From Kudoa neothunni (taxonomy: Eukaryota; Animalia; Cnidaria), in the NCBI GenBank assembly GCA_964304625.1, contig OZ199840.1, positions 115,795-179,794 on the forward strand: a stretch of 64,000 nucleotides of DNA, in the 5' to 3' direction. A program made the position numbers and the translations under genes. The notes beneath the pieces were generated by a model, which saw nothing but the letters and a program-made list of their open reading frames with translations, made no database searches and had not been told where the DNA came from. Shown in pieces: positions 1-58,336 of this stretch; the first letter of the stretch is position 1, and each line of letters opens with the position of its first letter.

Positions 1-2303
1 GAGGAGCATGTGTTTGAATTGACCGGGCTCGCAGTTGTATCAACTGTTGTAGCTGGGGCAACATTTGTGTCAGTTTCAGTTTGAGTAATAGATTCAGCTC
101 TTGCAATTTTTAATTCATTAATTTCTGATTTTAGACTTTGAATTTTACTAGTACCAGTTTGTCCTTGGTCGGGATTAGGACTGGATTCGGCTGGTGAGCT
201 TGGTGGAGTATTTTGAGTTTCTGGCGCAGCTGCTGGTGTCTGTGATGCTTCGCAGACGTAAACATCTTCAAACCTTTCATCTTTTTTTATTTGGATTGTA
301 TAATGACAAATGGCTTCTGGGACTTTTTTGGACAATTGTGCATTCAATTCCAATCCTTGCTCAGTGTATTTTTGAGTTATTCTCAAGGTTGCCAGATCTA
401 GATTGAGTTAATAAGTTAATTTTTTGAGAAATATACTCGTCGTAACATTTTCATATATGTGTTCCTTGTAATCCTTGTCAACAATGACCTTAACGTCGTA
501 AGAAGTGTTTGGTTCAAGATCAACAATAGTTATTGGTTCTCTACATCTTCCTCTACAGGGATTGGTTTCAGTACATTTAGCGGTGTAAAATGTATTTTTC
601 CCGGCTGGACTTACGTAATACTCGCAGTTTGGCTCATCATATTTATTAGATTCTGCTGTGCCTCCGATAGCTGTTAGTATAGTTGTTGATTCTGTTTTAG
701 TAGGGGCGGCTGCTTGAAAACTTTTATTATCCTCATTATCTTGTAAATATTATTAGTTAAGTTAATATTAAATTATTAGTTATTACTTGTTCTTATAAGT
801 ATTTTTTCTTTGAAGGAAGCTGGATCTGTTATACCAGATTCAATTTCGATGATGTATGGTTTCCCTGCAGACAGCCCTTCAATTACTAGTTTTTCGCAAC
901 CAGTTTTGCATTCACCACCTTCACTACCATCATTCTCCTTTTTAGTGGCCGCGTTACATGAAGTAGTTGAAGACGTGGGGTTGACTTTGTCAGCAGGATA
1001 ATGTTTTAGAGTGCATGTATTGAACTTAGGTTCCCGATGATGGATTTAAAAATCCCCCATCTAACGTTAAACCTTGTTTCGTATAAACAGATAATAAACC
1101 ATCTCCAGTCTCAGATATCGCTATAAGATTTATAATAAAATAATTATAATTATTGACTAAATAAATTACGAAATTTATTTTGGGAAAATCCATCAAAATC
1201 AGCAGATGTTTTTGAAAGATCGTGATTCCTGGTTTGAATTAGAACATTATATATCTCTTTTTCTGCTGTTACAGTTAGCTCAACGTCTTTGCATGGTGCG
1301 TAACACTTTCCTGCAGTATTTCCACAGTTTGATTCGAATTGTTGGTTATTTCCTGCAGATGTACCATCTTTAATACCAAAAACACAGATCTCAGATGATA
1401 GTGTTAAATCTGTGAATTTAAGGACAACATGATTAGCAGCTCCTGTCTTTTTAATAATATAATACTGAGGTTCATAAATAGCCATATTTTTCTTCATATA
1501 CGCATTTGGCATATAGTAAAAGAAACTTGGATAATTAATACATCTCATCTCATAGTGAGGAACCAATAAGTCAAATTCAACCTCATTATTAGTGTTTTCT
1601 GTGTCGCATGTTCCTCCATAGGTACCCGCTTTGAATTGTGCGTCTTTATAGTGAATAGGGCACGCAACTGGAGGACAAGTTTTAGTTAAGAGTTTTAGTT
1701 TTTTGCTCCCATCAACAGATATTGTTGCTTGGGGATTTACCAGTAACGCTAAATTAAATGATGATTTATCGATTCAAAATTATTTAAATTACGTATAGCC
1801 AAACCAAATACTTTCCCACCTTTTGGATAAGTCGCAGCTTTGGCAGCATTCGTATCAGTACTATCGAATACATATATGTATTTTGTTCGTGGGGTGAGTT
1901 TATTATATGTTTCTTTACTAGCTTGACTATTGCAATCTATCACACATTTGGTGTTACTATTAGTACTATCGTACTCGGGACAGTTTTCGATTTCTTCTAA
2001 GCCAGCTGCTGATGTTGAACCGAAACTGTTTGCGGATGCATTGGATATCAATATACGACACTTTTTTCCTTCGCCATAACTTGACCCAACAAGTATATGT
2101 TTTACTTTATTTGAATTACTAGCATCACCGTATTCAATTTGGTATTTGAGTGTTGCTGTGGGAGTAGACGCAGCTTGAGTTCCCGATACTGTTGCATTTT
2201 TTATCATACAAAATAATGCGACTTGCATGACTAACAAAAATTCATGATTGATAATAAGAAAATAAATACATAAGAGGAAATGCAAAAATTTATCTTTAAC
2301 CAT
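1..2303 (-). CDS. Surface-protein paralogue A, 3' end cut by the window edge; one +1 frameshift as assembled
   Basis: Exons 2270-2303, 1793-2230, 1170-1748, 787-1120, 437-739 and <1-397, separated by phase-1 GT-AG introns of 39-49 nt. Spliced N-terminus MVKDKFLHFLLFMQVALFCMIKNA is signal-peptide-like. An extra base in the ccc run at 1033-1035 makes exon 4 334 nt and gives a premature TAA; the frame is restored by comparison with copy C. Confidence 0.85.
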
Positions 2304-3497
2304 ACTAAAAGGTAAAAAAAAACAAATAGAAATGAATAAATCAATACTATAATTAGCCGATACTTGTATCGAATAAAAAGCCTATTGAAACGACTATATA
2401 CTTAAAGTCTTAATTCTTATTTACTATTAAATTAATAATTATGAATTTTATATAGCTATTAAAATGCTGAAAATTGCAAATTGAAACAATTATTTTATTA
2501 TATAGCTCAAATAAATTCGATAATACTTATCTCTCGTTCGCTTCTCCATAATAAATGCAAGGAAAAAATTAACGGATTGGACTAACCCTTACTGGATTAA
2601 AAAATAAGTTAAATATTGTTAAACTTCATAAACGATATTTACATTGACGTCATGCAAGGTCATCCTAGGTATAAATAATCTGAATAATTGGTAAAAATAT
2701 TTATTCGTATTCATTACGAATAAATCAATCATCTAGATAATTATAAATGTTAGACGACATATATTACGTTTGTGGTTTAATTTTGAGATCATTATAAATT
2801 TTGAAATTTTTTATTGTAGACATTATTTCCATTAAATATACTTGTAATAACCTATAGTTTTAAGTAATTATAGATCAACATGTTGCAACCTTAATTTCTA
2901 ACCATCATACATACAACATAAAGTAATTTAGTCATATTTTTCCTTACCAGAATTAATTATGGTCGCGACTTTGGTTTTTGGGGATTACTTTTATAATATT
3001 TTGATTAATTATATCCATAAGTATTTTAAAAAAATTATATAGCCAGAAATGGAAGAAACCCAATTTTTATGGAAATATCAAAGTATTGTCGTATGGTTGG
3101 AAAATAAAAATGAAGTTGTTTAGCGGATCCTATTTAATCTTGTGATTTCCGCCGTTTTTATATGCACATATAATAACTTCCATGATATTCTATCATAATT
3201 TTTCCTTTTATATTAATTCCATTTTTATAAATATAAATTGAATTTTACTTTAATTGAGATGGTTAACATTATTTCACAATCCGTTTATACACTTACCTAA
3301 ATAGCTTGGTCTAATTTATTTGTCACATCACATTCCAAGTATTGTTCCAATTATACTTTAAAGCTATTTAAAGTGTTACTATATCGAGCTCTTTTATATT
3401 CGAAAAATAATTATATTTTTTTTAATATCCCATGAAAAGATCAATAAACTGGATGCTCAAAATAATTTTAATCCAGTTAAAGTTTTAAAACATAATT
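2304..3497. repeat. Upstream flank of A, duplicated upstream of C (about 20744-21946)
   Basis: Colinear non-coding similarity visible by eye, e.g. aattaattatggtcgcgactttggtttttgggattac in both copies. Confidence 0.9.
2358..2371. promoter_or_regulatory. Palindrome CGATAC-TT-GTATCG about 55 nt upstream of the ATG
   Basis: Variants lie at the same distance upstream of C (~20800) and E (~58394, ccgacacttgtatcgg), with degenerate forms in B and D. Function is inferred only. Confidence 0.4.
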
Positions 3498-6037: not shown

Positions 6038-9000
6038 TTAGGGTAATAATTCGTAAATATGAGCGTTTATTTTTTTCTTCCTGAAAACCACGAAACCAAT
6101 AGCACCCATGATCATAGCTCCAATAGCGGCTACTGCAATGATTCTAAAACAATATCAGTTAAATTATAAAAACACAATAAATTAATACATGACCATGGTT
6201 TTAGAACTAAATGTAAAATTTATTTATGTTAAAAATATTAATTAATAAACCTTGAACTGCTTTTTGCTCCTAAAAGTTACAATTTAAATTATTTTCGAAC
6301 TAATAATGTTTTACCTTGCTCAATCGTAGCCGTCCCATAAACTGTTTTATCGGTGGAACTGTACACAGTCAAGTGATAATTGTTGCCATCTGCTAATCCA
6401 CTGATAGTGAATGATTTGCATGAAGGGTACGTTCTACATCCATTGTCATTTCGTCTCATGCATTTTTTAATAATTGCAATCGATTTGGTACTCGCATTAC
6501 GTAATTCCCACTTACATTTGGATTTTTCATTAAGACTAGATGGTAGGGTGTTTTCTATAACAAATGATTCACCATCCCTTGTTATGGTCACATATATTAT
6601 TTTGTCGTTTTCTGTGGGATTCCCCTTTGGAGCAGCTATTTATTTTAAATATAATAATAATATTGAAAATATTTTTACTAGCTACTAAAGTAATTTCATT
6701 TCGCTCTGATTTTCCCACTGCAGTAATAGACACTTTGTACTCTTCATTTGCATCATAGTCGTTAAATTTAATAGAACTGCACAATGGAAATGAGGAGCAT
6801 GTGTTTGAATTGACCGGGCTCGCAGTTGTATCAACTGTTGTAGCTGGGGCAACATTTGTGTCAGTTTCAGTTTGAGTAATAGATTCAGCTCTTGCAATTT
6901 TTAATTCATTAATTTCTGATTTTAGACTTTGAATTTTACTGGTAATAGTTGGTTGTTGGTCGGGATTAGGACTGGATTCGGCTGGTGAGCTTGGTGGAGT
7001 ATTTTGAGTTTCTGGCACAGCTGCCGGTGTCTGTGATGCTTCGCAGACGTAAACATCTTCAAACCTTTCATCTTTTTTTATTTGGATTGTATAATGACAA
7101 ATGGCTTCTGGGACTTTTTTGGACAATTGTGCATTCAATTCCAATCCTTGCTCAGTGTATTTTTGAGTTATTCTCAAGGTTGCCAGATCTAGATTGAGTT
7201 AATAAGTTAATTTTTTGAGAAATATACTCGTCGTAACATTTTCATATATGTGTTCCTTGTAATCCTTGTCAGCAATGACCTTAACGTCGTAAGGAGTATT
7301 TGGTTCAAGGTCAATTATTGTTATTGGTTCTCTACATCTTCCTCTACAAGGATTGGTTTCGGTACATTTAGCGGTGTAAAATGTATTTTTTCCAGCTGGA
7401 CTTACGTAATACTCGCAGTTTGGCTCATCTTTCTTATCAGTTCTTGCCGTATCTCCAATAGCTGTGAGTGTAGTTGTTGATTCTGTTTTAGTAGGGGCAG
7501 TTTCTTGGAAATTTTTGTTCTCCTCATTATCTTTTAATGATTATTAGTTTTGTTTATTTTTAATTTCAAATTATTACTTGTTCTTATAAGTATTTGTTCT
7601 TTGAAGGAAGTTAAATCTGCCATGCCACTGGACTCAATTTCAATTATATATGGTTTTCCCGGAGCCAGCCCTTCAATTATTAATTTTTCGCAACCAGTTT
7701 TGCAATCACTACTACTATCACCACTCTTTTTAGTGGTCGAATCACATTTAGTGGTTGATGCAGCGTGTTTGATTTTGTCAGCTGGGTAATGACTTAGAGT
7801 ACAACTAGTGAACTTGGTTTCTGATTCTGGCTTAAAGACTGCTGCGTCAAAAGATACACCTTTATTGGTATAATCTGACAATAAACCGTTTCCAGGCTCC
7901 AATATCGCTAATTATTAAATATATAATCTTATTAAATTTAATGATACCAAATTTTTTTTGTGAAAATCCATCTAAATCACCAATAGAAGTCTTTGAAAGG
8001 TCGTGATGCCTGGTTTGTACTAAAACGTTGTAAATATCTTTTGTTGCAGTCAAGGTAAGCTCAACATCTTTGCATGGTGCGTAACATTTTCCATCCTGAT
8101 TTCCACAGTTTGATTCGATTTGTTTGCTATTTCCTGCAGATGTACCATCTTTAATACCAAAAACACAGATCTCAGATGCTAGTGTTAAATCTGTGAATTT
8201 AAGAACAACTTGATTTGCAGCTCCTGTCTTTTTAGTAACATAATACTGAGGCTCGTAAATGGCCATATTATCCTTCATATACGCATTTGGCATATAGTAA
8301 AAGAAACTTGGATAATTAACACATCTCATCTCATAGTGAGGAACCAATAAGTCAAATTCAACCTCATTATCTCTGTTTGCTGTGTCGCATGTTCCTCCTA
8401 CAGTACCCGCTTTGAATTGTGCGTCTTTGTAATGAATAGGACACGCAACTGGAGAACAGGTTTTTGTTAGGAATCTCAATTTCTCGTTATTCTTAGACAT
8501 TGTTACTTGAGGATTTACCAGTAACGCTAAATTGAATAATATGATTTATTGATTAAAATTTGTTTAGATTACGTGTGGCCAATCCAAACACTTTTCCACC
8601 TTTTGGATATGTGTCTGCTTTAACTGTAGCCTCAACAGTATTATCATATACATATATATATTTTGTTCGTGGTGTGAGTTTATCATAAGGAACTTTACTA
8701 CCTTGACTATTACAAGCAATTATGCAATATTGGTTGTTATTCTCGGTGGTACTATATTCAGGGCAGGCCGTTATTTCTTCATATGCAGCTGCCCCTGTTT
8801 GGATACCATCGTTTGCGGCTCCATTGGACTTCAATAATCGGCACTTTTTATTATTTGAATAAGTAGAGCCGCCAAGTGTGTGCTTTATTACATTTGAGCT
8901 AGTGCCACTATCATATTCAATGTGATATTTGAGGGTTGCTGGAGGATCGGGTGCTGCATTATTTTCAATCAAATAAAGAAATGTGATTTGTATAACTATT

Positions 9001-9071
9001 ATTTATTAAATAACTATTACAAAACATTATATACAGAATAAATGATGTAGGAATTTTTGTATTGCTATCAT
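6038..9071 (-). CDS. Surface-protein paralogue B, 10 exons, type I membrane protein with FN3-like Cys-rich modules (881 aa as assembled)
   Basis: Exons 9035-9071, 8573-8995, 7948-8526, 7578-7907, 7228-7530, 6679-7188, 6315-6635, 6251-6269, 6189-6206 and 6038-6143 join in frame through GT-AG introns of 39-47 nt. N-terminus MIAIQKFLHHLFFIQITFLYLIENNA. C-terminus ..SSSKTMVIIIAVAAIGAMIMGAIGFVVFRKKK. FN3-like strands DLEPNTPYDVKV, GLAPGKPYIIEI, GLADGNNYHLTV. Confidence 0.9.
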
Positions 9072-11812
9072 TAACGAGATGGGGAAAACAATTACAACTG
9101 AATATATGAATGCTATATTAATGTCGATATTTGCGTCCGATAAGAAAATGAATTGGAACGAAAAATTTTTTTAATAGTATTATTTTTCTTTAATAATAGA
9201 TTTATCCAATAAATATTATTTTTTTCTTAATATTATATTATATAGTAACTTTAGAATTAAAAAATGAACTATGACCTAAAATTATGAAAGATTTGGAAGA
9301 TTATGACAATATTTTTGACTTACTATTAGAAAAATAAGAAAATGTAAATTCTAAGGTTCAACACTTATTTTTTTATTAAAGTAAATTGATTTGAAAAATC
9401 GCATACCGTACAATTTATAATGATCCATGATAAAATCATTTTTCCTTCACGTGTTTTTAGGAAATGCACGTTTCAAAAATGACAAATATATATAATTTTA
9501 ACTGTTAGCAATGATAAATTGATTAATTCCTAGATTATTTCGGTACCGACTGACATAGTTTATACCCGGAATGGTCGCACATAATCAAATTTTTACTTTA
9601 CTTTACTTTTCTTATCTATGTTATTATTATCATTTTTTAATCTCCCGATTTTTAAAAGTTGCAACAAATAATACTTTTATTATAATGGAAATGATAAATG
9701 AATCAAAATAATTGTTCAACAACACTAATTAATAAAGGTACTCGTTTTTATTGATAATCTCTAAAAAAGTAAAGGAATATTGAAAGAATCATATCTTTGT
9801 TAGAAAATTATCATAGAAGATCATTCAAAATTAATCCATTCATCAATATAGTTATTTATTAACAAAAATATTTACTATATACAAAATTATGAAGTAGAAT
9901 TTACTTATAGATTAATTTATAAATATTATTACAAAATCAAACATTTTGTTATACGAAACAACCAATTTTTGGTTTATTCGGCATCAGAAATTTAACATTT
10001 ATTAACTAAAAAAATTCAAATAGGTTGCTAAAAACTTTATTTTTATAATGAATACATTATCAACAACAATACTCGTTTATTTTATTATTTAATGTTGAAA
10101 AACTAAAATATCATTTTAACCGTGACAGTAAAAGAAAAATAATTCGTTTTATAAGTCAAGAATACATAAAATAAGAGATTATAAGACATAAATATTACAA
10201 ATTTTTGTATTACATTAAATTATAAAAAAATTATTTAGTTTAAAATATCCTGTATTGACATAGATGGTGAATCGTATTAGAGAAGTCGTTCAAATTAAAA
10301 TAATTTCTTGATCTAAAATATGCAGTAATAAAACGAATTCTTTTTAATTTCAAAATTAAACAACAACAATGATATCTCTACGAATAAAAATATATTCTGG
10401 ACAAAATGTGAAATAATTCCACTGTTGTTTTCTATATATGAAAGTAGTCTATTTCCTCAGTTAATCAAGTTAACCAAATTATTTTAATATAAATTAAATT
10501 ATGATTTTTATTTTGGGCAGTTTAGAAGTGAATGTTTTTCCTCTCAGTAAATTTTTAACTTATTAAAACATCTGTACTTCTCATATTTCTGAATAAACCA
10601 ATAGATTATTGATTACAAATATTATTTATAAAAAATAAAAATTTATCAGCCGTAGTTTTTTGAATGTCTGAATTAAAATTAAATATATTAAATAGCATCC
10701 ATGTTAGACTACTGAAATAACCCAAACCTGCAATATATTGTATCGATATTAAATAATTGAAATATTTTTATAGATAGGATAAATCAAAATTGAAATTTTT
10801 GTTATCTAAAACACAATGTTTGTTATTTCATTAAGCAGGAATATTGATTTAATAAAGATTAAACTAAAAACTTCTCTACGCAATTCTAATTAAAATTCAT
10901 TTTTAAATGATATATTTAAAATAACATTAATATAAATTTTTCAATAATACATCAACTCAAATGCCGAAAATGTCATTCCACGTTAAATGATCTTATCTCC
11001 ATTTTTTTAGTACATAATTTAATAAAATATACCATTCTTGACTTTATGGTGCCGTCAGACGTAGGAAACATGAGGCATTATTAAAAATATCCGTTTATGG
11101 ATCAATATCCGATCAATGTAAGTATTTCATTTTGTGTACATTCTTGCTATTGTATAACTCATAGGGTAGATGTTTCTTTGTATAATTTTTATTTTTTTCT
11201 GATAAATAACTACTTAATTTGTAAAATATATCTACTTATCAAAGTATAAAATTGTTATTCAAAATTTTTTTATGAATTTAACTTTATACTCAATGAAATT
11301 ATAAAAAATTTATTAAATGTCATCAATATTAATTAACTAAATGTATAATTATCTTATATAAGTATGAGATGAATTAAAGAATTTACCATAATTAGCATAA
11401 AATGATTAGACTAATCAAAAATTAATGCTTATTATTTAATAAAAATTTTGTATTAATATCTCTCATAACATAAAATGAGATAATAATGTATGAAAATAAA
11501 TTCACTGAATTTATTAAAAAATTTTGTTAGAACATACCAATCCGAAATCAATAGAGAAATTAAAGAAGGTAATTCTGACCTATTTAAATTTTTACAAAGA
11601 TTAAACATAACAATACTATTTATATAATAAATCTATTAAATTTATTTTAATCCTCTAACTACGTGAAATAAACGTACCCCTAACGACATTAGGGTAGATT
11701 TAACCCCAGATTTTCGTTGGATCATTATATTTGTAAAATTAATATATAGTAAAATGCGAAGTTTTAAAAAATTCATAAGAACAGATTTCTAGGAAAATAC
11801 AGAATATTCATA
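9072..11812. repeat. 2.7 kb upstream flank of B, duplicated upstream of D (about 31182-33925)
   Basis: Colinear similarity through to tctaggaaaatacagaatatt(c/g)ata in both copies. Confidence 0.95.
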
Positions 11813-14800
11813 CAGTCGAGATTGGATATTGCATGATTCGGTATTGGGTAATTTAAGATTTTCGATATGAAGATATTTACATTGGGACTTAATTTTAGAG
11901 TTATATCATTACTTTACTTATTAAATTAATAATATAGAATAAAAATAAAAAAATATTTTTTCTATGTGCCTCTGATTTAGTATTGTGTCAAAACTTTTTA
12001 TTGCGTAACGTAAATTACCAACGTGACTCGATATTGCGTGATTTCATCTTCAATATATCCAGGGAGCAGCGTGAAATTTCTGAGAAAATTAGAATAATAC
12101 AATATTACAATTCAATAAGATCAATAAAGGGCGCAAAGAAAATGACGTTTGAAAAGTTTAAACTTAGTGGTATGATTATTTTTAATCGATAACAATTTAT
12201 TTCTTAAAGGACATCCAACGCTTGACAGAATACTTTCTCATGAAACCATGCTGAAAAATTCAGATGTTGTAGGAAATAGGAAGAGGCATCCAAATGGAAG
12301 ATTTATCAACATAGACGAATAAGTTTATGAATGGTTTATCAAAAAACGCACCAATGGTCACATTATTTCTGGTGACGTAATACTTGAAATGGCCACCATA
12401 ATTTTCAGAAAGAATGTAGTTCAAAATTTTAAAGCAAGCAGGGGTTGGCTAGCGGGGTTTAAAAAAAGGTTTGGAATCATTTTCATGGTGAAGCTGCGAG
12501 CGCTAACGCTGCGTCTATTGATTCGTGCATCTATGAAAATAAAAATTTGATAAGCATATATAGCCCAAAAAATATCATCAATATTGACGAAACTGGTTTG
12601 TTTTATGAGCAATTACAGAACAGTAGTTATTAAAAGAAGAAAATGACATTAAAGGTAAAAAGCTATCGAAAAAAAGAGTAACGATTTCGGTATCGTGCTC
12701 TTTAAGCGGAGAAAAATTGCCCTTAGTCGTAATTGAGAAATACCAAAACCCCAGGTACTTCAAGGTGGTAAAAAATTTACCTTATGAGTATTATGCCCAA
12801 AAAAATTATTTGATGAACTCTGCTATTTTTTTCCAGATAATGAAAAAATTAAATTTTAAAATGGAGTCAGAACAACGAAAAATACTAATCTTGCTGGACC
12901 AATGTCCAGCACATCCCAAAGATATCACTTGCTTTAGTAATATAAAGTTTCTCTTCTTACCTAAAAATACTACAAGTGTTTTACAGCCACTCGATCTCGG
13001 AGTGATTAATTGTCTTTAAAGTAGATATAAAAAAATATTGTGTAGCCATATGGCATTATGTGATGATCCGTTAAATAATAGATATACATTACTTAATGCA
13101 ATTTTGACACTCCAAGAAGCATGGAACAGTATTCCACCCGAAATTATTGTCAACTATTTTAAAAAGTGGGGCATATTTAACAAAAGTAAAAGCTAATGCG
13201 AACTTCAAAAATTAATCCATTATCATAGGAGATACAGAGACGGAAACAAATGATAAAATTTTCGAAGATGAACAGAGTATATATATATATATATAATAAA
13301 ATTTTAATATTTTTATAGTCGAGGAGGAAACATGGGAGTCCAACTTTGATGATGATAACTTACCTACTTGTGAGGATGATAACGGCGGTGTCTTAACCCA
13401 TTCAGGGTTTTCATTGCGTTTTCGCAACAAAATGTATTTGATTATATAACAACATATAAAATTATTATTTTAAATGTATTCTGTTATTTTAAATACCCAA
13501 ACATATTAATTTATGGAAACAAATATTATTGGAGTTAATTCATATTTTAAGGTTGAACAAAATATGATTTTATGTGCTATTTTTGAAATTCCAACTAAAC
13601 GAACATCAATTAGAGTTTCGCCTAACACAGATCATGAAAATCTTATTAAAAAACATACCAACTGCCATTTGTCATTTAATATCTATATATGATAATGAAT
13701 GCATCAAAGGATTAATGAATAAATATTTATTTGTAAAAAACATGTGTTGCGAAAACGCAACGAAAACCCCGAACGGGGTAATTGTGCGCGCTGCTTTAAG
13801 TATCACTGTATAATGGATCCAAAATCGTACATGAATCTTTTTGATGCAATCAAAGAATATGAAGATAACGAAAATCTAGAGTTGACTGATTTTGTGTTAT
13901 TACCCCCTGAAAAAGTCGACACTCTTACAGATACTGAGGATAATTTTGAATCCAATTTTAATGGCATATGTGACATCAATTTAATTCCTGAGACGTGTGG
14001 AGAAATTGAAGTATTTTCTGAGGCTCTTGAATCCTTCGTAAATGATGATACCTTGATATGGACTGATAAAACTAATGTCGATTCTACTAAAGAAAAATCA
14101 AAATTTTTATGTCAGAATGAGACTATATTAATCAATCGGAATATGGATAATTTTTCCATCAATACTTGAAGGGAACTTAAATTCTTATGGAACTTTTTTG
14201 GAGTTATTTGATGAAAATTTATTTACACGCATCGTGAAACAATCTAATTTATATGCGAGCCAGAATAACAACCATGATTTTCATGTTACGATTAGTGAAA
14301 TGAAATCATTTATCGGTATTCTGATTTTGTCTGGTTATCATAGATTAGCACGCCAGTCTATGTATGGGGAATCTTCTCCAGACGCTGGTGTTGAACTCGT
14401 TAAAAGTTCAATGACCTACAAACGCTTCGAATCTATAAAAAAAATCATCCATTTTAATAATAATTCAAATATTGACACCATCGATAGATTTTTCAAGGTA
14501 CGCCCTTTAATTCAAGAATTTAACAAAAATTTCAAAAAATTTGGAATATTCGAAAAATATATATCTGTGGACGAGCATATGGTACCTTATACTGGTAGGC
14601 ATTCCGCTAAAATGTTTATGAAAAATAAACCAATTAGATTTGGCTTCAAGCAATGGGTTATGTCATCACCCTCCGGTTACATGTATAGTTTTGACGTGTA
14701 TAATGGAAAGTCAGCAAATTATGATAAAAAATATGGTTTGGGTGGTAGTGTAGTAATCTCTTTTGCGGATGAAGTAAAAAAATGAAAAAGATCTCAATAT

Positions 14801-17720: not shown

Positions 17721-17726
17721 TAGGGT

Positions 17727-38530: not shown

Positions 38531-39186
38531 CGTCATAAAATAATCGAAAAGTTGTTACGACCAAGATTGAAAACGAAATTATTATCCTCCAATATTGATC
38601 TAGCAATCACCTAAATGCTTCAGGTATAGTTGAGGGAATATTAGAAATCATATTTCTCACTCAGAACCGATAAAATATCTATTGCATCAATTTAAATCGT
38701 TATTCAGCCTACAAATATAAGATTTAATTTAAATACAATTTATTTTTAGAATTAAATACAGATATCGTTCGTCAATATCCAATTAATTGTTTCTAAAAAC
38801 AAACACGTTCTTAAACGACCGATATATTTAGATTTTCTCAGAGCGAAGATCCGTTTGGACGAAAAAATTTAAAATTCTGACTTTTTTCCAAAATCTTAAA
38901 ATTAAAATTTCGCTTGTTTTTATTCGTAACAATTTTTTTTCGTGTGAAACAACACGAACGAAACTCACGAATATGTCACCCCTGGATTATACTGCAAGTG
39001 AAAATTATTTGAATATAATACTTTTGATTTGACGTAATTTTAGAGTTTAAATGACTTTTATAAATTCTTATTTATGCTTTTAAATTAAAAATTCGAATTA
39101 AAAAAAGATAAACATTTTGGTAGATTAATTTTAATACGACCCCGCTTTAAAGTTAGGGTATGTCTGTTTGGCCCGTCACTCCGAAT

Positions 39187-39201
39187 GGTTGCCGACCCCT
39201 G
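39187..39201 (-). mobile_element. Solo hAT (Charlie-type) terminal inverted repeat
   Basis: Reverse complement CAGGGGTCGGCAACC resembles hAT/Charlie termini. No partner end was found. Confidence 0.45.
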
Positions 39202-44253: not shown

Positions 44254-46943
44254 CCCTCGAATACCTGGAGTGGACCACGCTGGTCCACGATAGACAAAAT
44301 TTGTAATATCTTTTTTCACACGTATTTTTAAACCTTTTTATGTATTCCAATTTTATGCTGTGAATATTCTTTATTACATTATAAAATAATAGACCTTTAA
44401 ATTTTGAGAATTTTTGAAGAAATAAGTAAATAAAAAAAGTTACGTAAATACCTGTGATGGACAATTTCGGTCCACGTGTAATTGTTAACGAAATTAATGT
44501 TTTGTACTATAATTACATCATTCTAAATTTAATATTATATTTCGTAAGAAATTTAAAATATTCTAAAACAATTTATGATTAATAATATGTTTAATGAAAG
44601 ATTTATATCGAATTTATTTTATGATAAGTTTGAACGCACAACGAGAATTTGCTTAAAAAATGAATTCTGGCGGAGAACATATACTTTTTTAAAAGGATTA
44701 TGAAAGTTCTGACAATACACCATAAATTAAAAGTGGTTTAGAGGACTTGGGTGAAATAATTAATGAGCCAGTCAGTAATGGCGACGTTGATGATGCTTAC
44801 GATAACGATGCTAACATTGAAGATATGACCTATGTCTCTTTAGTTGTCTCTCAAGTTAGAGAAACATGGCATAACTTCCGACTAGATTTGAAAGGAGGTT
44901 TAAAAAGTAAAATATTTTTAATGTAAAAACGGAATTTAAAAAAAAATCTTTCCAGAATGGCCGAACTCCCATGAGGTCTTTTAATAATTTATTGACCAAT
45001 AAAATGTTGGAAAAGATCCAATATTGTAACAAAACATTTATTGAACAAGAAAAAACCTACTGCGAAAAAGATAAATATGGCCTAGTTGAAAGTTTTTTTC
45101 GGAGCTATCATTAATTGGCGTAATGAAAGGCTAAAATGAAAAAATTCGATAATTTTCAACTGAAAAATATGGCCTTCAATCGCTTATTGCAAAAATTACA
45201 AGAAATCGCTTTGAAGATTTTGCAGCTTGTCTCAGATTCGACAAGGGAAGAACCAGGGTTAGAGAGGGTAAACATTCCCCCATCAGATATATATTTGATG
45301 AGTTTATAAATACGTATAAAGAAAGTTACAACCCATCTCCCCCTTTGACTGTGGATGAACAGCTTGTCACATTCAGAGGTCGCTTCCCCTTCAAAATGTT
45401 CATTCCTTCTAAGCCTAGCAAGTATGGGATAAAAATATGGGCGTTGTGTGATGCAACAAACGCACATCTATGCAATGCAAAGATATATATTGACAAAGAG
45501 AACGGCGTTGTTGAAACCAACCAAGATGAAAATATAGTAGAGCATCTAATTACACCTTATTTAAAATAATGTCGTGACGTTACCACTAACAATTTTTTTA
45601 CCACACTGTCACATGCGAGATACCTAATGTATCACAAAACAATAATTGTGGTAACTGTTCGTAAAAATAAAAAATTTTTCATCCCAGAATTTTAATCATC
45701 AAAAGGAATACCAGACGATATGAAATTTTTATTTCAGGATAAATTTACCTCGATAAAATACAATCTCAAAAAAAAATAGATCCGTGGGTACTTTTAAGTT
45801 CTATACATCGAGGTTGTGATATTGACCATGAGTGGAAAAAACCGGAGATCATAAATTATTACTACCAAACTAAAGGAGGGGGTGGATACGCTCGACCAAA
45901 TTGCCCCCTGCTATTCCCCAAAAAGAGCCACCCGTCGTTGCCCAATGGCAATTTTATTTAACATTATCGATATGGCCTCCTATAATGCGTATCTTTTGTA
46001 TGTTTATCGAAACCCGCAATTCAAAAATGCTCATAAAAAACGATCCCGAAGAGAGTTTTTAAAAATGTTAGCGGAAGAATTGTTCGAAAACGATGGCATG
46101 CATTTTAAAACCATCCAAATAAAAAGGAAGGAACCTACATCTGGAAGAGAAAGATGCCAAATTTTCTCAATAAACAAGTAAAAAACCACGACAATTTGTT
46201 CAAGTTGCAACAGATTTTTCTGCAAAACTCACAGAATTGAAAATACAGGATGCGATGTGTGTAACAAAAAATAAAATAAATTGTATTATTTATATATTTA
46301 ATTTCACAATATTTTTATCCGAAATTAAATTTTTACATTAAATTTGAGTATATCCGCAAAATATATCATATAGTGTAATTTACCTATTTAGATTTTAGAC
46401 GAAACGATTAGAATTAATGTCATTATAATGAGATGGTATAGATAGTTTGAACATGAATCTCAGTTTCATATTGTAAAGTATTAAATTTTTTTAAAGTTAA
46501 ATTATCGTTTGTAATCACAAACAAAAACATTTAATGATTATATGTTTATTATAATGGTTTTTTTCCAATACATTAAAACACCATTTAAATTAAACCGCTA
46601 ATTACACTCATAAAATAACAATTATGAAAATGATAAACTTATTTTAAGTATAAAAATTATATAGGCTAAAGTTATTTTGGCTCATTTTTACGATATCGAT
46701 TTTATATAAGTTTATATTTGCAAATTATTTATTTTTTTTATGCGTGCGTGCGTCAAAGAATTTGATTTTAATGTTTTAATTCAAATGTTCTTTCCTTTTT
46801 TGTAACTTAACAAAAAGCTATTGGGTTGTTTTATTTATCTTCATAATTAAATAGTTTCAAATATAATTATGCTATGACTAAATTCATAATACCATAGCGG
46901 TCCTCTTCAGGAATTCGTGTAACTTTTTCCAGGTATTCGAGCG
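44254..46943 (+). mobile_element. Decayed piggyBac element
   Basis: TTAA|CCCTCGAATACCTGGA ... TCCAGGTATTCGAGCG|TAAA. Motifs TVDEQLVTFRGR, PSKPSKYGIKIW, TKGGVDTLDQ and a Cys-rich tail. Many stops. Confidence 0.92.
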
Positions 46944-49599
46944 TAAATTAATTATTAGAATTAGAATTTTGCTATTTAAAATCGTTAAAATCGTTCAAAT
47001 TATGATAATTTAAATAAATTTTAGTTTAACTTCATCTGCGGGTTAATATAAAGGTTTTATATATATTTTTGAATAATTTAAAAGATTTTTCAATGAAAAA
47101 CATCTTCAATTTTAGGTAATAGTGAGAAAATTGGATTATTATTCCAATATTTATATAAAAATATTGAAATACACTCATTTGACTATTTCTTCAAAAAGAT
47201 TTCAATAATAACTTAAGAACGACAGTATTAATTAAATGAGAGTTAGTTACTTAAGAATCAATTATTAATAGTTATATTTCTTATACATATAAAATTACCG
47301 ATTCCGTCATGGAAACTCTTAATGTGTGAGATGTAATTGGTGCTTTGTATCCGATGGATATTAGACGTCGATTTGTTCTAATAATATTTTATTTACATGA
47401 AAAAAATAAAAAACCACATGTTATGATGAATTCTAATAAGATCGCCATCTTGAATCATGTCAGTTTTTGAGCCGGAAAACTTTTCAATGCGCCAAAAGGC
47501 AGAATCTTGTTTTTTAAAGATATTTGTCACCTACGTAAAAATATAATTAAACGAATTTCGAAATTTCAAGGCATCCTTTACCGCGTAGTCATCGGTAGCA
47601 TTATTTTTCAAATATGTTGTATTTTTTCCATTCAGAAATAACTCATATGAAGAACATGGACTCATAGAAACAACACTATTATCCCCAACAACTATTTGGA
47701 TAATTTAGATGCGTATCAAATTTGAACTATCACATTGAGATATATTTTTTAACCTATTTTCAAAAATGTTGCCTTTTAATGTAGAAGAAAATGAATTGGA
47801 AAACTTCAGGTAGAATTGCCCACTAATTAATTTATTGATAATTAAAGTTTTGATATATTTGGAAACTTACTGATTATTGGTTATTTTAAATCTTAATCCA
47901 TTAATAGCACAATATACTGACAACGAGAGTATCAATAGATAGGAGACCCTCGTGATTATAAATTTGAATATTTTAACCTTTAGTTTCAATTAAATGAAAA
48001 ATAATTTATTACAAATTGTACCAAATTGTTGTTACGGTCACAAACCAACCACCACAAATCTGAACATGTTATTACTCCAATAGCTAATAACATGAATAGT
48101 CCACTTAATTTCACACTAAATTCAATCAGTAAAACCCAAATATTACATTTATTTCACCTTATACATAGACCAATACCAATACCAGTCATAACGAGTTCAT
48201 AAATCCCAGAGTAGATGTTTTTTGTATTGCTTTTCGGAAAATTAATACATATATTATCAATTTATTTCTAAAAGTACTATTTGTTTCTGTATCGCATGTA
48301 ATAATAAACAGTTAACAACATAAAAAATATGTGTGGAGAATCGAGAAGAACATATCTTGTGATTGTGCAGCTTGCAGTATCTAAAAATAACTAATGAAAA
48401 ATATAATACATTAATTACCGAAAATAACAAATAAAGTGCATAAAAATGACGTCATTGTTGATTTTGTAATTTCAAATGAAATTAAAAAGATCAAAATGAC
48501 AATCAATACGCCGATCAAACATGAAAACTAATCTAAATTATCAACTAACAACAACACTAAATCTACTTGTCGCAATGGAACATAGAAATCACTTGGATAC
48601 TTCATTCCTGGGGTTAAAAATGTAAAATTTCCATCATATCCAGTATACCATGCTACCCCCGCATACATCATCTAACAATTAAACTCTGATAATACCACAA
48701 AAATTAATTAACTAACAATTCCTAGAGGAGGGTGCACGTCCAAATAAAATTCCCTTTTAAGAAAACTGTTGATAAATTTTCCAAAATGTGTTTCATCCCA
48801 ACTAAATATAATGTTGTAATAAAAAGTTAATGTCAATTTTCTACCATATCCAGTCAGGTTCCTCCACTTTGTAGAATCTGGTCATTATAGCCATCAACAC
48901 CACAGCACTAATTGTTCCATAAAAAAATGTTTTATCAACTAATGCCATCTTTTTTGAACTTAAATTTATTTTTTTTATTTCTCACTATATAACAATATGA
49001 ACTTCTTCAATAATGAATAGTGTTAAAGTTCGAGATTTTTCGACACACTCAATCTTCTTTACAACAGGGACTCACTCCACTCGACTAATTTCATTCATAA
49101 CAAATTTTATTTATTTTAATTAATTTGTAAAATAACAAGATACTTGTAATTAGTTCTTAAAATGATTGAAAAAAATGTTATTTTGAACTCATTAATTTTA
49201 CAAATATTAAATAATAATTTTTCCTCGTAAAAATTGGATGTAATCTAAACCTTACCTCCTTCGGATGCTTTTTGAATTTCCGAAAGGAATAATAAATAAT
49301 TGTTTTTAATTATGATTTCTCTAATTTTTCGAAAATATTAAAATATTTTGTTATATAAAAATATTTAATACCGTTATCATTAATTAAAATGATAGTAATA
49401 TATTTAATAAATGACGACTAATTTATGTTTATTATATTTGCAGATTAAATTAGTTCGAATAAATACTCATTTTATTTGTAAAGTTTTATGACATAAGTTA
49501 TTAAATTAATATATCTAATTTTTACACTTTGTGCGCATGCGCAGACAGCATATTTAAACAATAAAGTAAATATAACGTCTCACATGATTGATGATTGTC

Positions 49600-50451
49600 T
49601 ATTATTTTGTTTTAAAATAGTTTTTAATTTTTAATATAATGTAATTTATTTCTTCCTCGAATGAAGAAATCTTAGAATATTGGTTAGATCCATGATGCAT
49701 AAAGTAAGCTTTTATCTTCGATAAAAAATCCAACGCTTCGCTTTATGTGGGTATTATATCGTTGTGAGATTCATTGTCCTCAACATGAATTGCTAACCGA
49801 TTTCCATATGGTATCAGCCTCGGTATCTTTGAAGATGTTGATGATATCTTCTTCCTCAATCATTTCTCTTATTTCATCCGTTAATGGACAAGAATAATCA
49901 TTCTGGATGTGGATCGGGCATTCATCAAATTCTTGAGGATTTTGCTGGAATTTTCGGGGAAAACCCCGACTTTTTTTAAAACAATTTTTAATTGTATCCA
50001 CGTTTAAATTATTCCATACCTCTCCAGTCATCAGTGTTGCGTCAAGAATGTCTGCAACTTTGGGTGTCACATCAGCTTCAACCGATGATATAAATTGTTT
50101 AATCATATTTTTTATAATGACATTTAAAAGCATGGATAATGCCCTGGTCTAGTAATCGAAGAACACTGGTTGTGTTTTTCGGGAAATATATTAACTGAAT
50201 GTTCGAAAGATTTAAGAAGGTGTAGCAGGTAGCAGTGTCGAGAAATATTACAATAGTTCCAACTTTGTTTCTAAAATGTGAATTCAATTCAACCATCTAA
50301 GACTTGGAAATTTGAATGGACATCCAGGCTTATTTATTGCCTCTAGAGGGTAACGATGATTTAATGTTTTTAAAACATTTGGGATTGTTGAATTTACCAA
50401 CTACTAAGGGGATCAATTTTTCGCCTGTCAATGACGCACCTAAAAGCAACG
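49600..50451 (-). mobile_element. 3' half of a pogo/Tigger-like transposase
   Basis: TLLLGASLTGEKLIPLVVGK, IFLDTATCY, YFPKNTTSVLRLLDQGIIHAFKCHY and DTIKNCFKKS. Confidence 0.85.
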
Positions 50452-50453
50452 TA

Positions 50454-52383
50454 CAGTAGTAGTAGTGCAGGGTTATTGCGTAGCAGGGGTACTACGCACT
50501 TTATGATATTATGGCACTGTGCCCTGATATAAATACACAGTGTTGTTATTTAAAGTAATAAACACTTAAAAATGTTTAATTGAGTGAAATTATTTTTGAA
50601 AATATGACTCAGAGTCAGAAAATTTGGCTGCATGCTTACTGCGCACAAAAAATCCCCCAATTCGATCCAACGACATGGTTAGTACGAAATTAAGAAATCT
50701 GAGAAAGTATCCATAGTTAGATAACAAAGTTAAAATAATAAACCATTATGATGATATAAAAAAGTTCAGTGGCTCAAAAGCTAAAACTGTTGAGAAATTT
50801 GAATTAAAATCGAAATCTTCGTTAAGCAGCATAATATTAAAAAAAAACAGTATTCTGAAAGATTATAACACCGGGAACCTCAAGAAAAGATAATTTCAAC
50901 GTTTTAGATTCTAAGGTTAAAGGGTGGATTGAGCTAGTGAAATCACCTAGTATCGAATTCTCTCAGGATGATGTAATTGAAAAGGTCTACATTTATTCAT
51001 ATGAAGTTAAAACACAATTAATAAGGTTGGTTTTAAGGATTTTCTTCGAGAGTTGGGTTGATAACAACAAGTTCATTGATGAATACAATAATGTTGTTCC
51101 TGAAATAATTTCCTCTTGGAAAGATCAACCGTTAGAGTTTATCAGAAATTATGATCCGAAAGATATTTTTCATATGGATGAAACTGGATTTTTTTGCCAG
51201 AAAAAAGATAAAATACCATTTAAATTTACATCTCTGAGAAATGTAATGTATGGTTATGCATTTGAAATGGAGGAGAATTTGCGCGGTTCTAAAAAATCCA
51301 AAGAGAAAGTAAAAATCGTTGCGATCTACTCGATGTCAGAATAAAGACTCGTATTAATAATTCGCAATCATGAAAAGCCTTGGTGTTTGCATATAATAAA
51401 AGGCCTCCCACTTCCCTATTAAACTAACAAGAAGACTTTATTTTTTAAAAATATCTGATGGTATAAAAGCTGAAACTTCTCAATGTAAGAGAAGAACCAT
51501 ATGATTTGGTAAAAATTTCCCAGTTCATCCCACACTAAATTTTTCAAATATTCAACTCTATTTTCCACAAAAGAAACAACCAGCGTATTGCAACAATTAG
51601 ATCAAGGAATTATTAATGGTTCTTAATACATGTACAAAAATAATCTGACGAATTATTTGATAAATAAAGTTACTGTTAATTCTGTTAGTATATTGATATC
51701 AATTTAAATAATGATCCACCAGATTTACTTGATGATATGTACATGATGAAAGAAGTGTGGAAATTAGTGAGTGAAGAAATAATCAAAACCTGTTTTAAAA
51801 AATCATTTTTGTTAATAATTGCAGATCAGGAGACATTATGCTTTCGATTGGGAGTAAATCCCTGGAAAAATCAAACTGAAGGTCGGGTTAATATAGAAGA
51901 AATTACTTCATTTAAAGGTCCAGAAGGTAAATATGTTAACTCAATAAATAATGAAGTCGTCGCAGTGAATAAATCGTTTACTGATGAAAATTATTAAAAA
52001 ACTAACAACACTAGTTCCATTGATGAGGTCATTGGGAATTTTAATAAATTAAGAGAAAATATTTTTGCTCGTGGTTTACCTGTGTTAGAAAATAAAACAA
52101 AATTGAACTTTTCCATCTGTAAAATAAGACACGGTTCGTAAAAGAATGATAAAATGGCTGACTGTTTAAAAAAATCCACATATTTTCGAATAATTATAAT
52201 GTATTTATTCGACATTTGTTGTTTTTCGTTTAACATTCAACTTTGTATGAATATCTCCTAGTTATCATTAATGTAAAAAAGAAAGTGTAACTTTTAAATA
52301 CAAAATATGACCGCGCGCGAGCTTGGATACTACGCACCTAAAAGGTTTATCCCAAAAAAGTGCGTAGTATCCCTGTACTATTG
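50454..52383 (+). mobile_element. Decayed pogo/Tigger-like element
   Basis: TA-flanked ends sharing CAGGG(G/A)TACTACGCACTTT in inverted orientation. Motifs YDPKDIFHMDETGFF, GSKKSKEKV, TTSVLQQLDQGII and IIKTCFKKS. Confidence 0.85.
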
Positions 52384-52389
52384 TATTTT

Positions 52390-53200
52390 CATTAAAATAA
52401 AAATTTCTTTAATGAATTAATTTCAGCTGAATCCTTATCAACAAAAATAACTTTTGTTATTTCTGTTTCTTCCATTCATTTACGAAACGAAGATATTACA
52501 TTATCAACCAAATTTTGAGTTTCATTTTTAACGAAAGCGAAGAAGTTTGATCGAGTTCGTCCATGAGAGTCAACTAATGCAAAGTTTTACAATGGATATT
52601 TTGTTTTGTTTACTTTGTAGGTTTCATCAATATGTAAAATTTCACCATAGTTAGCATAGTGACTGCATATTTTTCGTAGTGAAACAGAAAACGTTTAGTT
52701 GATCCGATTCTGCTTCTTTGTAGACGTTGAGCAAGAGTTGACCATCTTGTTTTTTAGAAAGGTGTTCCATAGAGAATGATTCTTGAGTATTCTTGTATAT
52801 GCGATGTTTCAGATTTCTAATTTGCTTTAAACTGAAAGGGATGTTCAAATCGGATTCAAGACTTTCTTTGCTCCTTTGTTATCTGCACCCCAATAAAAAC
52901 ACAATGTTAACGATCGTTTCATCTCATTCGATACATTTTGATTATATTGATAGAAGGATATGTCGTATTTTACGTGATTTCGAGTTATATTGTAATTAAG
53001 CACATATACCGCTTCGTTTTGAGTAGATATGGTAATAAATGCTGGACAAATTTTGATAACGAGGACTGAGGTGCAGATGTACTTTTTTTGAATGGTTAAC
53101 GTCGCCATGTGGGCAGATATATTTAATATATCCGCAAATTAATTTTTCTTCGTTATTATTAACATTATCCGACTGATTATCTTCATTTTTATATTCGATG
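52390..53200 (-). mobile_element. MULE-type transposase fragment
   Basis: Minus-strand YGEILHIDETYKVNKTKYPL..LVDSHGRTR..FAFVKNET..IFVDKDSAEINSL is the MULE DDE first-Asp region. An upstream C..CPAFI zinc-finger-like piece is also present. Confidence 0.75.
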
Positions 53201-55337: not shown

Positions 55338-58336
55338 TTAATTTTTCTTCTTGAAAACCACGAAACCAATAGCACCCATGATCATAGCTCCAATAGCCGC
55401 TACAACGATTACTCTAAAATGATGTCAGTTAAATTTTAGGAATATAACAAAGTAATACATGACCACGGTTTTAGAACTAAATAAAAGAATTAATTTATTT
55501 CAAAAATATTAATTAATAAACCTTGAACTGCTTTTGGCTCCTAAAAGTTACAATTTAAATTATTTTCGAAGTAATAATGTTTTACCTTGCTCAATAGTGG
55601 CCGTCCCATAAACTGTTTTATCGGTGGAACTGTACACAGTCAAGTGATAATTGTTGCCATCTGCTAATCCACCGATAGTGAATGATTTGCATGAAGGGTA
55701 CGTTCTACATCCATTGTCATTTCGTCTCATGCATTTTTTAATAATTGCTATCGATTTGGTACTCGCGTTACGTAATTCCCACTTACATTTGGATTTTTCA
55801 TTAAGACTCGACGGAAGCGTGTTTTCTATAACAAATGATTCACCATCCCTTGTTATGGTCACATATATTATTTTGTCGTTTTCTGTGGGATTCCCCTTTG
55901 GAGCAGCTATTTATTTTAAATATAATAATAATATCGAAAATATTTTTACTAGCTACTAAAGTAATTTCATTTCGCTCTGATTTTCCCACTGCAGTAATAG
56001 ACACTTTATACTCTTCATTTGCATCATAGTCGTTGAATTTAATAGAACTGCACAATGGAAATGAGGAGCATGTGTTTGAATTGACCGGGCTCGCAGTTGT
56101 ATCAACTGTTGTAGCTGGGGCAACATTTGTGTCAGTTTCAGTTTGAGTAATAGATTCAGCTCTTGCAATTTTTAATTCATTAATTTCTGATTTTAGACTT
56201 TGAATTTTACTAGTACCAGTTTGTCCTTGGTCGGGATTAGGACTGGATTCGGCTGGTGAGCTTGTTGGAGTATTTTGAGTTTCTGGCGCAGCTGCCGGTG
56301 TCTGTGATGCTTCGCAGACGTAAACATCTTCAAACCTTTCATCTTTTTTTATTTGGATTGTATAATGGCAAATGGCTTCTGGGACTTTTTTGGACAATTG
56401 TGCATTCAATTCCAATCCTTGCTCAGTGTATTTTTGAGTTATTCTCAAGGTTGCCAGATCTAGATTGAGTTAATAAGTTAACTTTTTGAGAAATATACTC
56501 GTCGTAACATTTTCATATATGTGTTCTTTGTACTCCTTATCAGCAATGACCTTAACGTCGTAAGAAGAGTTTGGTTCAAGGTCAATTATTGTTATTGATT
56601 CTCTACATCTTCCTCTACAGGGGTTAGTTTCAGTACATTTAGCGGTGTAAAATGTATTTTTCCCGGCTGGACTTATATAATACTCACAGTTTGGCTCATT
56701 TTTCGGATTGCTTTCGTTGTTACCTCCAATGGCTGTTAGTATAGTTGTTGATTCTGTTTTAGTAGGGGCAGTTGCTTGAAAATTTTTGTCATCATTTTTA
56801 TCTTTGAAAACTTTTAGTTACTGCTAGTTAATTTTCAATTGTTACCTGTCCTTATAAATATTTGTTCTTTAAAATTATCTGGATCTGTTATACCAGATTC
56901 AATTTCGATGATGTATGGTTTTCCTGGTAATAGTTGCTCAATTACTACCTCAGTGCATTCTATTTTACAGGTATCAGCTCCACTGACACTCGTACTGCTA
57001 TTGCATTTCGATACCGTAGTTGTAGCCGGCTTAATTGTGTCAGCAGGATAATGCTTTATAGTACAAGTAGTGAATGCAGTCCCTGATGGTTTATATACGG
57101 CAGCATCCAATTTTACACCCCCCTTTTTCAAATCAGACAAAAGACCATCTCCACTTTCCAAAATGGCTATAAAAACGAATATACAATATTGTTACGAAAA
57201 ATAAAATACCAAACTTTTTCTGAGAAAACCCATCTAGATTACCGGTAATGGTTTTAGATAGGTCGTGGTGTTTGGTTTGAATCAAGACTTGGTAGAATGC
57301 TTTTGCTTCAGTTACAGTAAGTTCCACATCTTTACAAGGTACGTAACACTTTCCGGCAGTATTACCACATTTTGATTCAAACACAGCGTTAGCTGCTTCC
57401 CGTTTACCGCCCTTAATGCTGAATATGCAAATTTCAGCGGATAATGTTAAATCTGTGAATTTAAGAGCAACTTGATTAGCAACTCCCGCCCTTTTTGTTA
57501 CGTAATACTGAGGTTCATAAATAGCAATATTTTTCTTCATGTATGCATTTGGCATATAGTAAAAGAAACTTGGATAATTCACGCATCTCATCTCATAATG
57601 AGGAATCAATACGTCAAACTCAACATCATTCTCTGTGTTTCCTGTATCGCATGTTTGCCCTGCATTACCCCCTTTGAATTGTGCGTCCTTATAATGGATT
57701 GGGCACGCAACTGGAGAGCAAGTTTTTGTTAGAAGTTTCAATTTTTCTGTAGCCATAGAGATCGATACTTGAGGATTGACCAATAATGCTAAATTTGATG
57801 AAATTATTTATCAATTCAAAGTTATTTAGATTACGTATGGCTAAACCAAACACCTTTCCACCTCTTGTATACTGCTGTGATTTAACAGTCCCATCTTCAC
57901 CAACATATACATACATGTATTTTGTTCTAGGAGAAAGTTTATCATATGGTACTTTACTTGTTTGGCTATTGCAATCGATTATGCATTTTGTGGTTTCGGC
58001 AGTTTCATGTCCAGGGCATTCTGAAATTTCTTTAAGATCAGCTGGAGTACTTGAGTCGAGTATAGTTTCTGCTTCGTTTGACCTCAATATACGACATTTT
58101 CCTGTAGCATAACTTGTTCCGCCAAGTGTATGCTTAACTACATTGGAGCTAGCGGAGCTATCATATTCAATTCGATAATTTAGAATAGCTAATGGAGTAG
58201 ACGTTGATGGAGAAGCGGGCGCCGTTGCATTTTCCATCGTACAAAATAATGCGATTTGTATGACTAATAAAGATTCACTGATGATAATAAAAAACTATAT
58301 ACATAGGAGGTAATTCAAAAATTTATCCCTAACCAT
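55338..58336 (-). CDS. Surface-protein paralogue E, intact, 10 exons, 869 aa type I membrane protein
   Basis: Exons 58303-58336, 57835-58263, 57210-57788, 56846-57166, 56499-56801, 55950-56459, 55586-55906, 55522-55540, 55459-55476 and 55338-55413 total 2610 nt in one open frame. Signal-like MVRDKFLNYLLFIQIALFCTMENA; TM VVIVIVVAAIGAMIMGAIGFVVF followed by KKKN*. Intron 1 has an in-frame TAG, supporting that it is spliced. Confidence 0.92.

Follow-up and report, generated by a model that had tools for sequence, protein, structure and literature searches.

In trypanosomes, the VSG coat combines a distal part that varies with a membrane-proximal part that is conserved, and mosaics arise via recombination among hundreds of copies. 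The taeniid EG95/45W/TSOL antigens, encoded by a multigene family of these parasites, are FN3 proteins of the secretory pathway; a role in adhesion was proposed for them, and one family member is a pseudogene. EG95 itself consists of a single FN3 domain encoded in three exons, carries a glycosylphosphatidylinositol (GPI) anchor and is under positive selection (PMC2671473). The Alr genes of Hydractinia are clustered and divergent and encode single-pass proteins with mostly one domain per exon and with extra disulfides, in which V-set/I-set Ig domains are combined with one FN3-like extracellular spacer (ECS) that lacks the EF-loop Leu/Tyr corner; six Cys are invariant and immunoreceptor tyrosine-based activation or inhibition motifs (ITAM/ITIM) are often present (PMC9546547). 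The VSP of diplomonads, defined by more than 10% Cys and many (>5) CXC/CXXC motifs, and the VSP-like proteins of the fish parasite Sphaerospora molnari combine a signal peptide, a large ectodomain, one transmembrane (TM) segment and a short basic tail, and are multi-copy with DNA transposons nearby (bioRxiv 10.64898/2026.02.11.705288; PMC11792419). Myxozoans have been seen to vary their antigens, by a mechanism stated to be unknown (bioRxiv 10.64898/2026.02.11.705288). Here we describe a gene array in 64,000 nt of Kudoa neothunni DNA (contig OZ199840.1, 115,795-179,794, forward strand; this whole stretch is called the window), which by analogy resembles EG95/45W in fold, VSP in topology and VSG in its logic of variable tip and constant base. 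We put at about even chances that it belongs to a multigene family of type-I membrane FN3 rods, with distinct tips on a common base, that provides a variable coat or an adhesin facing the host.

The window (29% GC) holds exactly five copies of the gene, all on the minus strand, and neither self-BLAST nor exon-wise tBLASTn found extra fragments in it. Copy A (1-2303) comprises exons 1 to 6 and is cut inside exon 6 by the window edge, copy B (6038-9071) stays open through its TM segment, copies C (17727-20743) and D (28170-31181) have three and four one-base indels respectively, and copy E (55338-58336) is an intact 10-exon gene encoding 869 aa. The initial annotation, made from the letters of this DNA, had read some 40 scattered open reading frames (ORFs) as five same-strand copies of one gene of about 870 aa with ten exons hidden by mini-introns, and the mapping of the copies confirmed this. 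In the copy alignment, the 10 exons and 9 introns lie at identical positions in each copy. All 41 introns of copies A-E are GT..AG, 37 of them starting with GTA, and they are 39-49 nt long with a GC content of 15% compared to 38% in exons. Because the introns are only about 40 nt, ORF-based annotation misses the family. The GC values are close to those published for Kudoa, where exon GC is 37% and intron GC 19-26% (PMC12239612); myxozoan introns have reduced GTa..AG signals, with median lengths of 22-27 nt in myxobolids (PMC13644364) and values of 49-61 nt in Kudoa. The splice signals of the window agree with this myxozoan pattern, and its introns exceed the myxobolid medians. Intron length speaks against myxobolids and dicyemids as the source, and TAA as a stop codon against ciliates; on circumstantial grounds, the analysis placed the source probably in a non-myxobolid myxozoan. 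Introns 1-7 are in phase 1 and introns 8-9 in phase 2, so that phase 1-1 module exons would permit in-frame skipping. Each intron of copy E, when retained, introduces a stop or a frameshift.

Once spliced, copy E is a single open frame, encoding an N-terminus that is basic and then hydrophobic, seven 4-Cys modules, a Ser-rich stalk, a TM segment and the tail KKKN. Exon 1 (58303-58336, minus strand as are all exons; 34 nt) carries the first half of a putative signal peptide, which ends in exon 2 (57835-58263) ahead of module 1. Exon 3 (57210-57788) encodes modules 2 and 3 with 8 Cys, and exons 4 (56846-57166), 5 (56499-56801), 6 (55950-56459) and 7 (55586-55906) encode modules 4 to 7, of which module 6 contains an insert and module 7 is membrane-proximal. 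Two micro-exons of 19 and 18 nt (exon 8, 55522-55540; exon 9, 55459-55476) make up the Ser-rich stalk, and exon 10 (55338-55413) encodes the TM helix, KKKN and the stop. An alternative intron right after the ATG of copy E was rejected, as its acceptor is present in E alone; the adopted intron 1 is kept in all copies and in a relative from another sample (L004).

Relatives were searched exon by exon, and exon 3 alone was taken to the largest scale, as a profile against 1.84 billion representative proteins without length limit. This gave 14 matches, 13 of which are real relatives with 19-45% identity, every one a singleton in a raw assembly of ENA or Logan; P0013 was dropped as a low-complexity repeat. 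No annotated, NCBI or UniRef protein was among the exon-3 profile matches, kin that match via other exons only lying outside this search. Word-index searches with the exon-3 alignment returned one protein each, such searches missing full-length kin of an exon-sized query, and a scan of JGI metagenomes returned no match. The ORFs of the window are absent from a large protein collection, and our literature search found no paper on such a family. Twelve relatives could be traced to five samples, namely ERZ795007, RIIS20-1/SAMEA5316497 (three), SRR31175926 (at least four), SRR33849685 (three) and SRR33529766, and all relatives found are genomic. Two of these samples are linked to fish circumstantially: run SRR33849666, 19 numbers away from SRR33849685, is a skate whole-genome run, and RIIS20-1 probably belongs to the codfish gut study PMC7054092, although its accession does not occur in that paper. 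The family, which the initial annotation had not recognised and had supposed to be lineage-specific, was indeed limited to these five raw samples in the exon-3 search; it appears to be an undescribed family, present in at least five other samples with conserved exon structure.

Two of these relatives bear directly on the gene model. L004 shares 22-35% amino acid identity per exon with the window copies and matches them in the length of exon 1 (34 nt) and in the positions of all nine introns; it also has a TM segment and a KKK tail, its micro-exons being 43 and 9 nt long with phases as in the window. In L002 (67-1068), intron 2 is missing and exon 2 joins exon 3 exactly at the predicted junction, with introns 3-5 kept. 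Because the intron positions of L004 and the junction in L002 agree with it, the gene model is supported independently. Other relatives vary in module composition: in L005 (1-520), exon 3 is preceded by an additional module and a spacer, and module 4 is reduced in Cys, and L011 (620-1370) diverges past exon 3, where a non-Cys region follows. In a tree, the window copies form their own clade (99/97), and the paralogues of the other samples branch deeply and are mixed with one another instead of sorting by sample, those coexisting within single samples sharing 15-35% identity. The branching suggests that the family is old and that its local expansion in the window is young.

The modules had been annotated as Cys-rich, a description that did not hold: copy E contains 3.3% Cys, with neither CXC nor CXXC and four CX3C, and its Cys follow a pattern of four per module, in modules that appear FN3-like instead. 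AlphaFold2 modelled exon 3 (17 sequences) as two all-beta domains of beta-sandwich type, with a predicted local distance difference test score (pLDDT) of 78.5, and Foldseek matched this model to 30 PDB entries at E<=1e-3 (best E 7e-5), nearly all tandem FN3/Ig ectodomains. The clearest FN3 signal in sequence lies in exon 5, which Pfam fn3 matches with 14.9 bits and E 0.03 in copy E (gathering cut-off 25) and in six of seven family members (best E 9e-5); the other exons of E gave no fn3 match in Pfam. A profile of exon 5 searched against the PDB found mostly FN3 proteins, aligning to fibronectin and Dscam via the EF-loop Leu/Tyr-corner motif, of which the EF-loop Leu and the tyrosine-corner Tyr are kept in exons 4 and 5 and degenerate in exon 6. 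A single-sequence model of exon 5, of poor quality (pLDDT 43), matched almost only FN3 and is a hint at most, and matches in a viral fold library were of generic FN3/Ig type. In profile comparisons, module 4 is homologous to module 5 (E 6e-5), and module 5 weakly to module 7 (E 0.009). A neuraminidase match of Pfam on exon 2 (E 0.001, under the cut-off) was taken as chance. An FN3-like fold is thus predicted well by the model of exon 3 and weakly by that of exon 5, and the FN3 precedent drawn by the initial annotation proved right as a fold only. The protein would form a rod of FN3-like modules, presumably disulfide-stapled.

The best structural matches of exon 3 are the disulfide-containing FN3 pairs of cytokine receptors and CD45 (IL-2Rgamma, IL-10R2/IL-22R, IL-17RA, CD45 d1-d2), which raises the alternative of an immune decoy or mimic whose FN3 pairs bind host cytokines or lectins. 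Soluble forms could be freed by late-intron retention, since introns 7-9 of copy E, when retained, lead to a stop ahead of the TM segment and their retention would yield a soluble protein; intron retention has been reported in myxozoans (PMC12239612). However, identities of 8-14% and TM-scores of 0.3-0.4 are those of generic tandem FN3, and in the model these matches identify the fold, not a family. The 869-aa protein of copy E contains neither WSxWS nor RGD motifs and a single Trp, the conserved FN3 strand-B Trp thus being missing; searches with exon 3 found no receptor by sequence and no match at all in PDB sequences, and a four-residue tail leaves no JAK-binding cytoplasmic region. We therefore regard a decoy function as quite improbable.

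A hydropathy scan (19-residue window, cut-off 1.6) found a single TM segment in copy E, the putative signal peptide staying below the cut-off. The N-terminal signal peptide is suggested by its residue pattern and by its conservation in L003 and L004. The TM segment with a KKKN tail, as annotated initially, is found in C, D and E; in B as assembled, the tail is 18 residues long. As for a GPI anchor, the hydrophobic segment of E is followed by a basic tail. The argument that so short a tail speaks against direct signalling stands, as no signalling tail is present and C, D and E have four residues only. Together, the TM helix and a basic stop-transfer stub would anchor the rod on its short Ser-rich stalk, and the protein would display or bind rather than signal, having no signalling of its own.

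Lysines at positions -3 and -4 constitute the KKXX motif for retrieval to the endoplasmic reticulum (ER). KKKN in C, D and E (55338-55352 in E) has Lys at both positions, and the protein could accordingly be read as an ER/Golgi resident, a luminal scaffold or cargo receptor acting for instance in spore or capsule assembly. This fit with KKXX had been overlooked in the initial annotation, as had the polarity from tip to base, the mosaic structure, the indels in four copies and the probable myxozoan origin. L004 ends in YKKK, though, which does not fit KKXX, and the lysines abut the TM segment as they do in stop-transfer stubs and in the tails of Sphaerospora and Spironucleus surface proteins. 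Diversification restricted to the tip would moreover be hard to account for in an ER resident, which we consider very improbable, the least probable of the explanations weighed here.

Divergence among the copies is graded along the gene. Between E and B, amino acid identity in exons 2 to 7 is 56, 73, 62, 81, 97 and 99%, from tip to base, so that the copies are variable, as first annotated, in their outer modules (56-73%), compared to 97-99% at the base. Among all copies, exon 2 is the most variable (66-91% nucleotide identity), exon 4 shows 63-85%, exon 6 97-99% and exon 7 92-97%, and the inner two modules with their adjoining introns are 92-100% identical in DNA. Synonymous divergence (dS) is mostly 0.7-1.05 in exon 2 and 0.02-0.07 in exon 6; identity among copies is 90-100% in introns 5-6. 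Because dS in exon 6 is low and introns 5-6 are nearly identical, selection at the protein level alone cannot explain the identity of the base. At 191 informative sites among B-E, copy relationships change from BD|CE in exons 1-3 over a mixed pattern with BC|DE in exon 4 to CD|BE in exons 6-7, a switch with a permutation p of about 1e-5. The relationship switches and the contrast between tip and base therefore argue for gene conversion.

The flanks of the copies are shared as well. The upstream flank of B (9071-11813) is common with that of D (to 33926) over 2.7 kb, the whole block being 93% identical, the upstream flank of A (2303-3497) is common with that of C (to 21946) over 1.2 kb, and the downstream flank of C (16771-17726) is common with that of D (27302-28169) over 0.9 kb, which is evidence of a chimaeric copy. 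Because the upstream flanks of B and D match, the duplication unit exceeds the gene. This arrangement points to a duplicated two-gene unit, followed by unequal exchange and gene conversion, as the origin of the array.

In the explanation that we favour, the copies would have multiplied by tandem duplication in a region rich in DNA transposons, and unequal crossing-over together with gene conversion would have homogenised the membrane-proximal half and shuffled the distal modules into mosaics. Each gene would then encode a rod of seven disulfide-stapled FN3-like domains, and the outer tips, which differ between copies while the base is shared, would make up a repertoire serving as a variable coat or an adhesin towards the host. 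Surface location and a host-facing role are presumed here, as would be any switching between copies. Several results weigh against this explanation. dN/dS is 0.28-0.38 in all pairs and below 1 for each exon and pair, and the variable sites of exon 3 show no significant enrichment in loops (p=0.28). Five copies are a small repertoire. The TM-scores of exon 3 are low, and homology among the seven modules is significant solely for modules 4/5 and weak for 5/7, the remaining ones aligning by Cys spacing only. Finally, the most transposon-rich myxozoans are the myxobolids, which have introns shorter than those of the window. Diversity among the copies is evident, but diversifying selection is not supported by a dN/dS of about 0.3, which indicates purifying selection and function retained across the copies.

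The same dN/dS of about 0.3 throughout favours a family of fixed-specificity adhesion or recognition proteins, in which each paralogue binds its own ligand, the tips being old and subfunctionalised, conversion acting locally at the base and no immune-driven switching taking place. The ligands could be of host or parasite, by stage or tissue, or adhesion could be homophilic between cells in the cell-in-cell state. The deep paralogues (15-35%) that coexist in single samples without grouping by sample fit with this, and the two types of upstream region, A/C and B/D, suggest separate regulation. On the other hand, recombination tracts cross module boundaries and make chimaeras, and the window copies are a young clade. 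We see fixed specificity as a tentative alternative, rather unlikely although it deserves to be kept in mind. A more far-reaching version of the variable coat, in which the array takes part in antigenic variation in Myxozoa by expressing one FN3-rod variant at a time and generating new tips by conversion onto a constant base, in a VSG-like way but with the fold of an adhesion molecule, seems to us unlikely.

As assembled, only copy E is fully intact. Copy A has a one-base insertion in exon 4 (near 1035) and copy B is shifted by one base within an A-run (near 6079), which results in its longer tail. In copy C, two one-base indels in exon 3 compensate each other (near 20175 and near 20028), and exon 6 contains a third (near 18590). 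Copy D has four of them, one each in exon 5 (~29513) and exon 6 (~29214) and two in exon 7 (~28660 and ~28446). These nine indels in A-D, and the decayed DNA transposons all around, could mean that E works and that the rest are pseudogenes, decaying duplicates in a transposon graveyard whose mosaicism is neutral or partly a polishing artefact. But all nine lie inside or beside homopolymers, and the 3264 aligned codons of A-D contain no in-frame stop, though about 5% of random substitutions would create one. Splice sites are intact in all 41 introns, broken copies included, dN/dS of the indel-bearing copies equals that of the E-B pair, and copy-specific variants still present in the 3' half argue against a collapse of copies. 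Because the indels sit at homopolymers, stops are missing and dN/dS matches E-B, long-read consensus error is likelier than recent inactivation, and we find decay of the array improbable. The indel-bearing copies were used for comparison only, with their sequence unrepaired.

Compared with the described systems, the array shares single features with each. The initial annotation had named EG95/45W and Alr as precedents in kind, and by the features tested neither extends to membership. Whereas EG95 has a single domain and three exons, the gene described here encodes seven modules of four Cys each in ten exons, with a TM segment and basic stub and a dN/dS of about 0.3, and the exon-3 profile found no similarity to cestode oncosphere antigens among the 1.84 billion representatives. 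With Alr, the array has in common that the genes are clustered (five copies in 58 kb) with one domain per exon, except for exon 3 with its two modules; unlike in Alr, the modules tested are FN3-like rather than Ig domains followed by an ECS, the Leu/Tyr motif is kept in exons 4 and 5, and the four-residue tail of C, D and E provides no signalling. The single TM segment and short conserved basic tail of VSP are found here too, in contrast to their Cys content, CXC/CXXC motifs and fold. VSG differ by an unrelated fold and by their copy number, and each copy in the window has its own upstream region. As to function, Alr control allorecognition through homophilic binding, and VSP are characterised by switching and by expression that is mutually exclusive.

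The surface families proposed earlier are Sphaerospora-specific; the present one spans several unrelated samples. It is a concrete candidate, open to testing, for the way in which fish parasites attach to the host or evade its immunity, and diagnostics or vaccines could naturally be aimed at the modules next to the membrane, which are almost invariant. Even as a plain adhesin family, it would be a new disulfide-stapled variant of FN3.

Module 6 of copies A-E has an insert of about 80 aa between Cys 2 and 3, in which two Ser/Thr/Pro-rich arms flank a short heptad-like stretch, and which may be an oligomerisation or O-glycosylated loop. The insert is absent in L002 and a different one is present in L004, where a short tandem duplication in the insert (3180-3400) closes the frame of exon 6, which means an extra intron or a break. 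At 40-75 nt 5' of every ATG (~58370-58410 in E), a CGA-N8-TCG-like inverted motif occurs in all five copies, degenerate in B and C, and a TCAGTT-like motif is found in the same zone in four of the five; A/C and B/D upstream regions differ otherwise. The two motifs are a possible core promoter candidate.

L003 (1-5424), from sample SRR31175926, gives a view of the family in a different setting, a gene-dense contig of 21% GC. The family member adjoins an SNF5 gene (E 1e-17 to human) whose product carries the INI1 winged-helix domain, reported from metazoans only (PMC4509781), and other neighbours are a tRNA-binding domain, an adenylate-kinase-like protein, a 380-aa low-complexity ORF and mitochondrial S14. 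Its surroundings are housekeeping genes rather than a field of transposons.

In the window, no host genes were recognised in the spacers, nor was any housekeeping or RNA gene found (no match in Rfam). Between B and C (12627-15530, plus strand) lie decayed transposase ORFs of pogo/Tigger type (DDE_1) and piggyBac type (DDE_Tnp_1_7). Just upstream of the piggyBac-type ORFs (14198-15530), a 37-nt inverted repeat (89%) starting with TTAACCC occurs at 13393-13429 and 13745-13781, 315 nt apart, and probably represents piggyBac terminal or internal repeats. The C-D spacer holds an element with long terminal inverted repeats (21998-27313; arms 21998-22265 and 27053-27313, ~270 nt, 82%), in which a Merlin/IS1595-type element is nested (22542-25023; arms 22542-22692 and 24871-25023, ~150 nt). 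The D-E spacer (34577-52878) contains FLYWCH (MULE-type), piggyBac and pogo-like remnants. Expansion of piggyBac, pogo and MULE elements is typical of myxozoans (bioRxiv 2026.02.11.705288), and the landscape of the window fits with this. Dispersed repeats of about 250 nt (82-84%) pair 38060-38312 with 60349-60594 and 38289-38529 with 63127-63366; in the region of 38.0-38.5 kb the two lie side by side, but at 60.3-63.4 kb they have a piggyBac remnant between them, and the arrangement looks like an internally deleted element.

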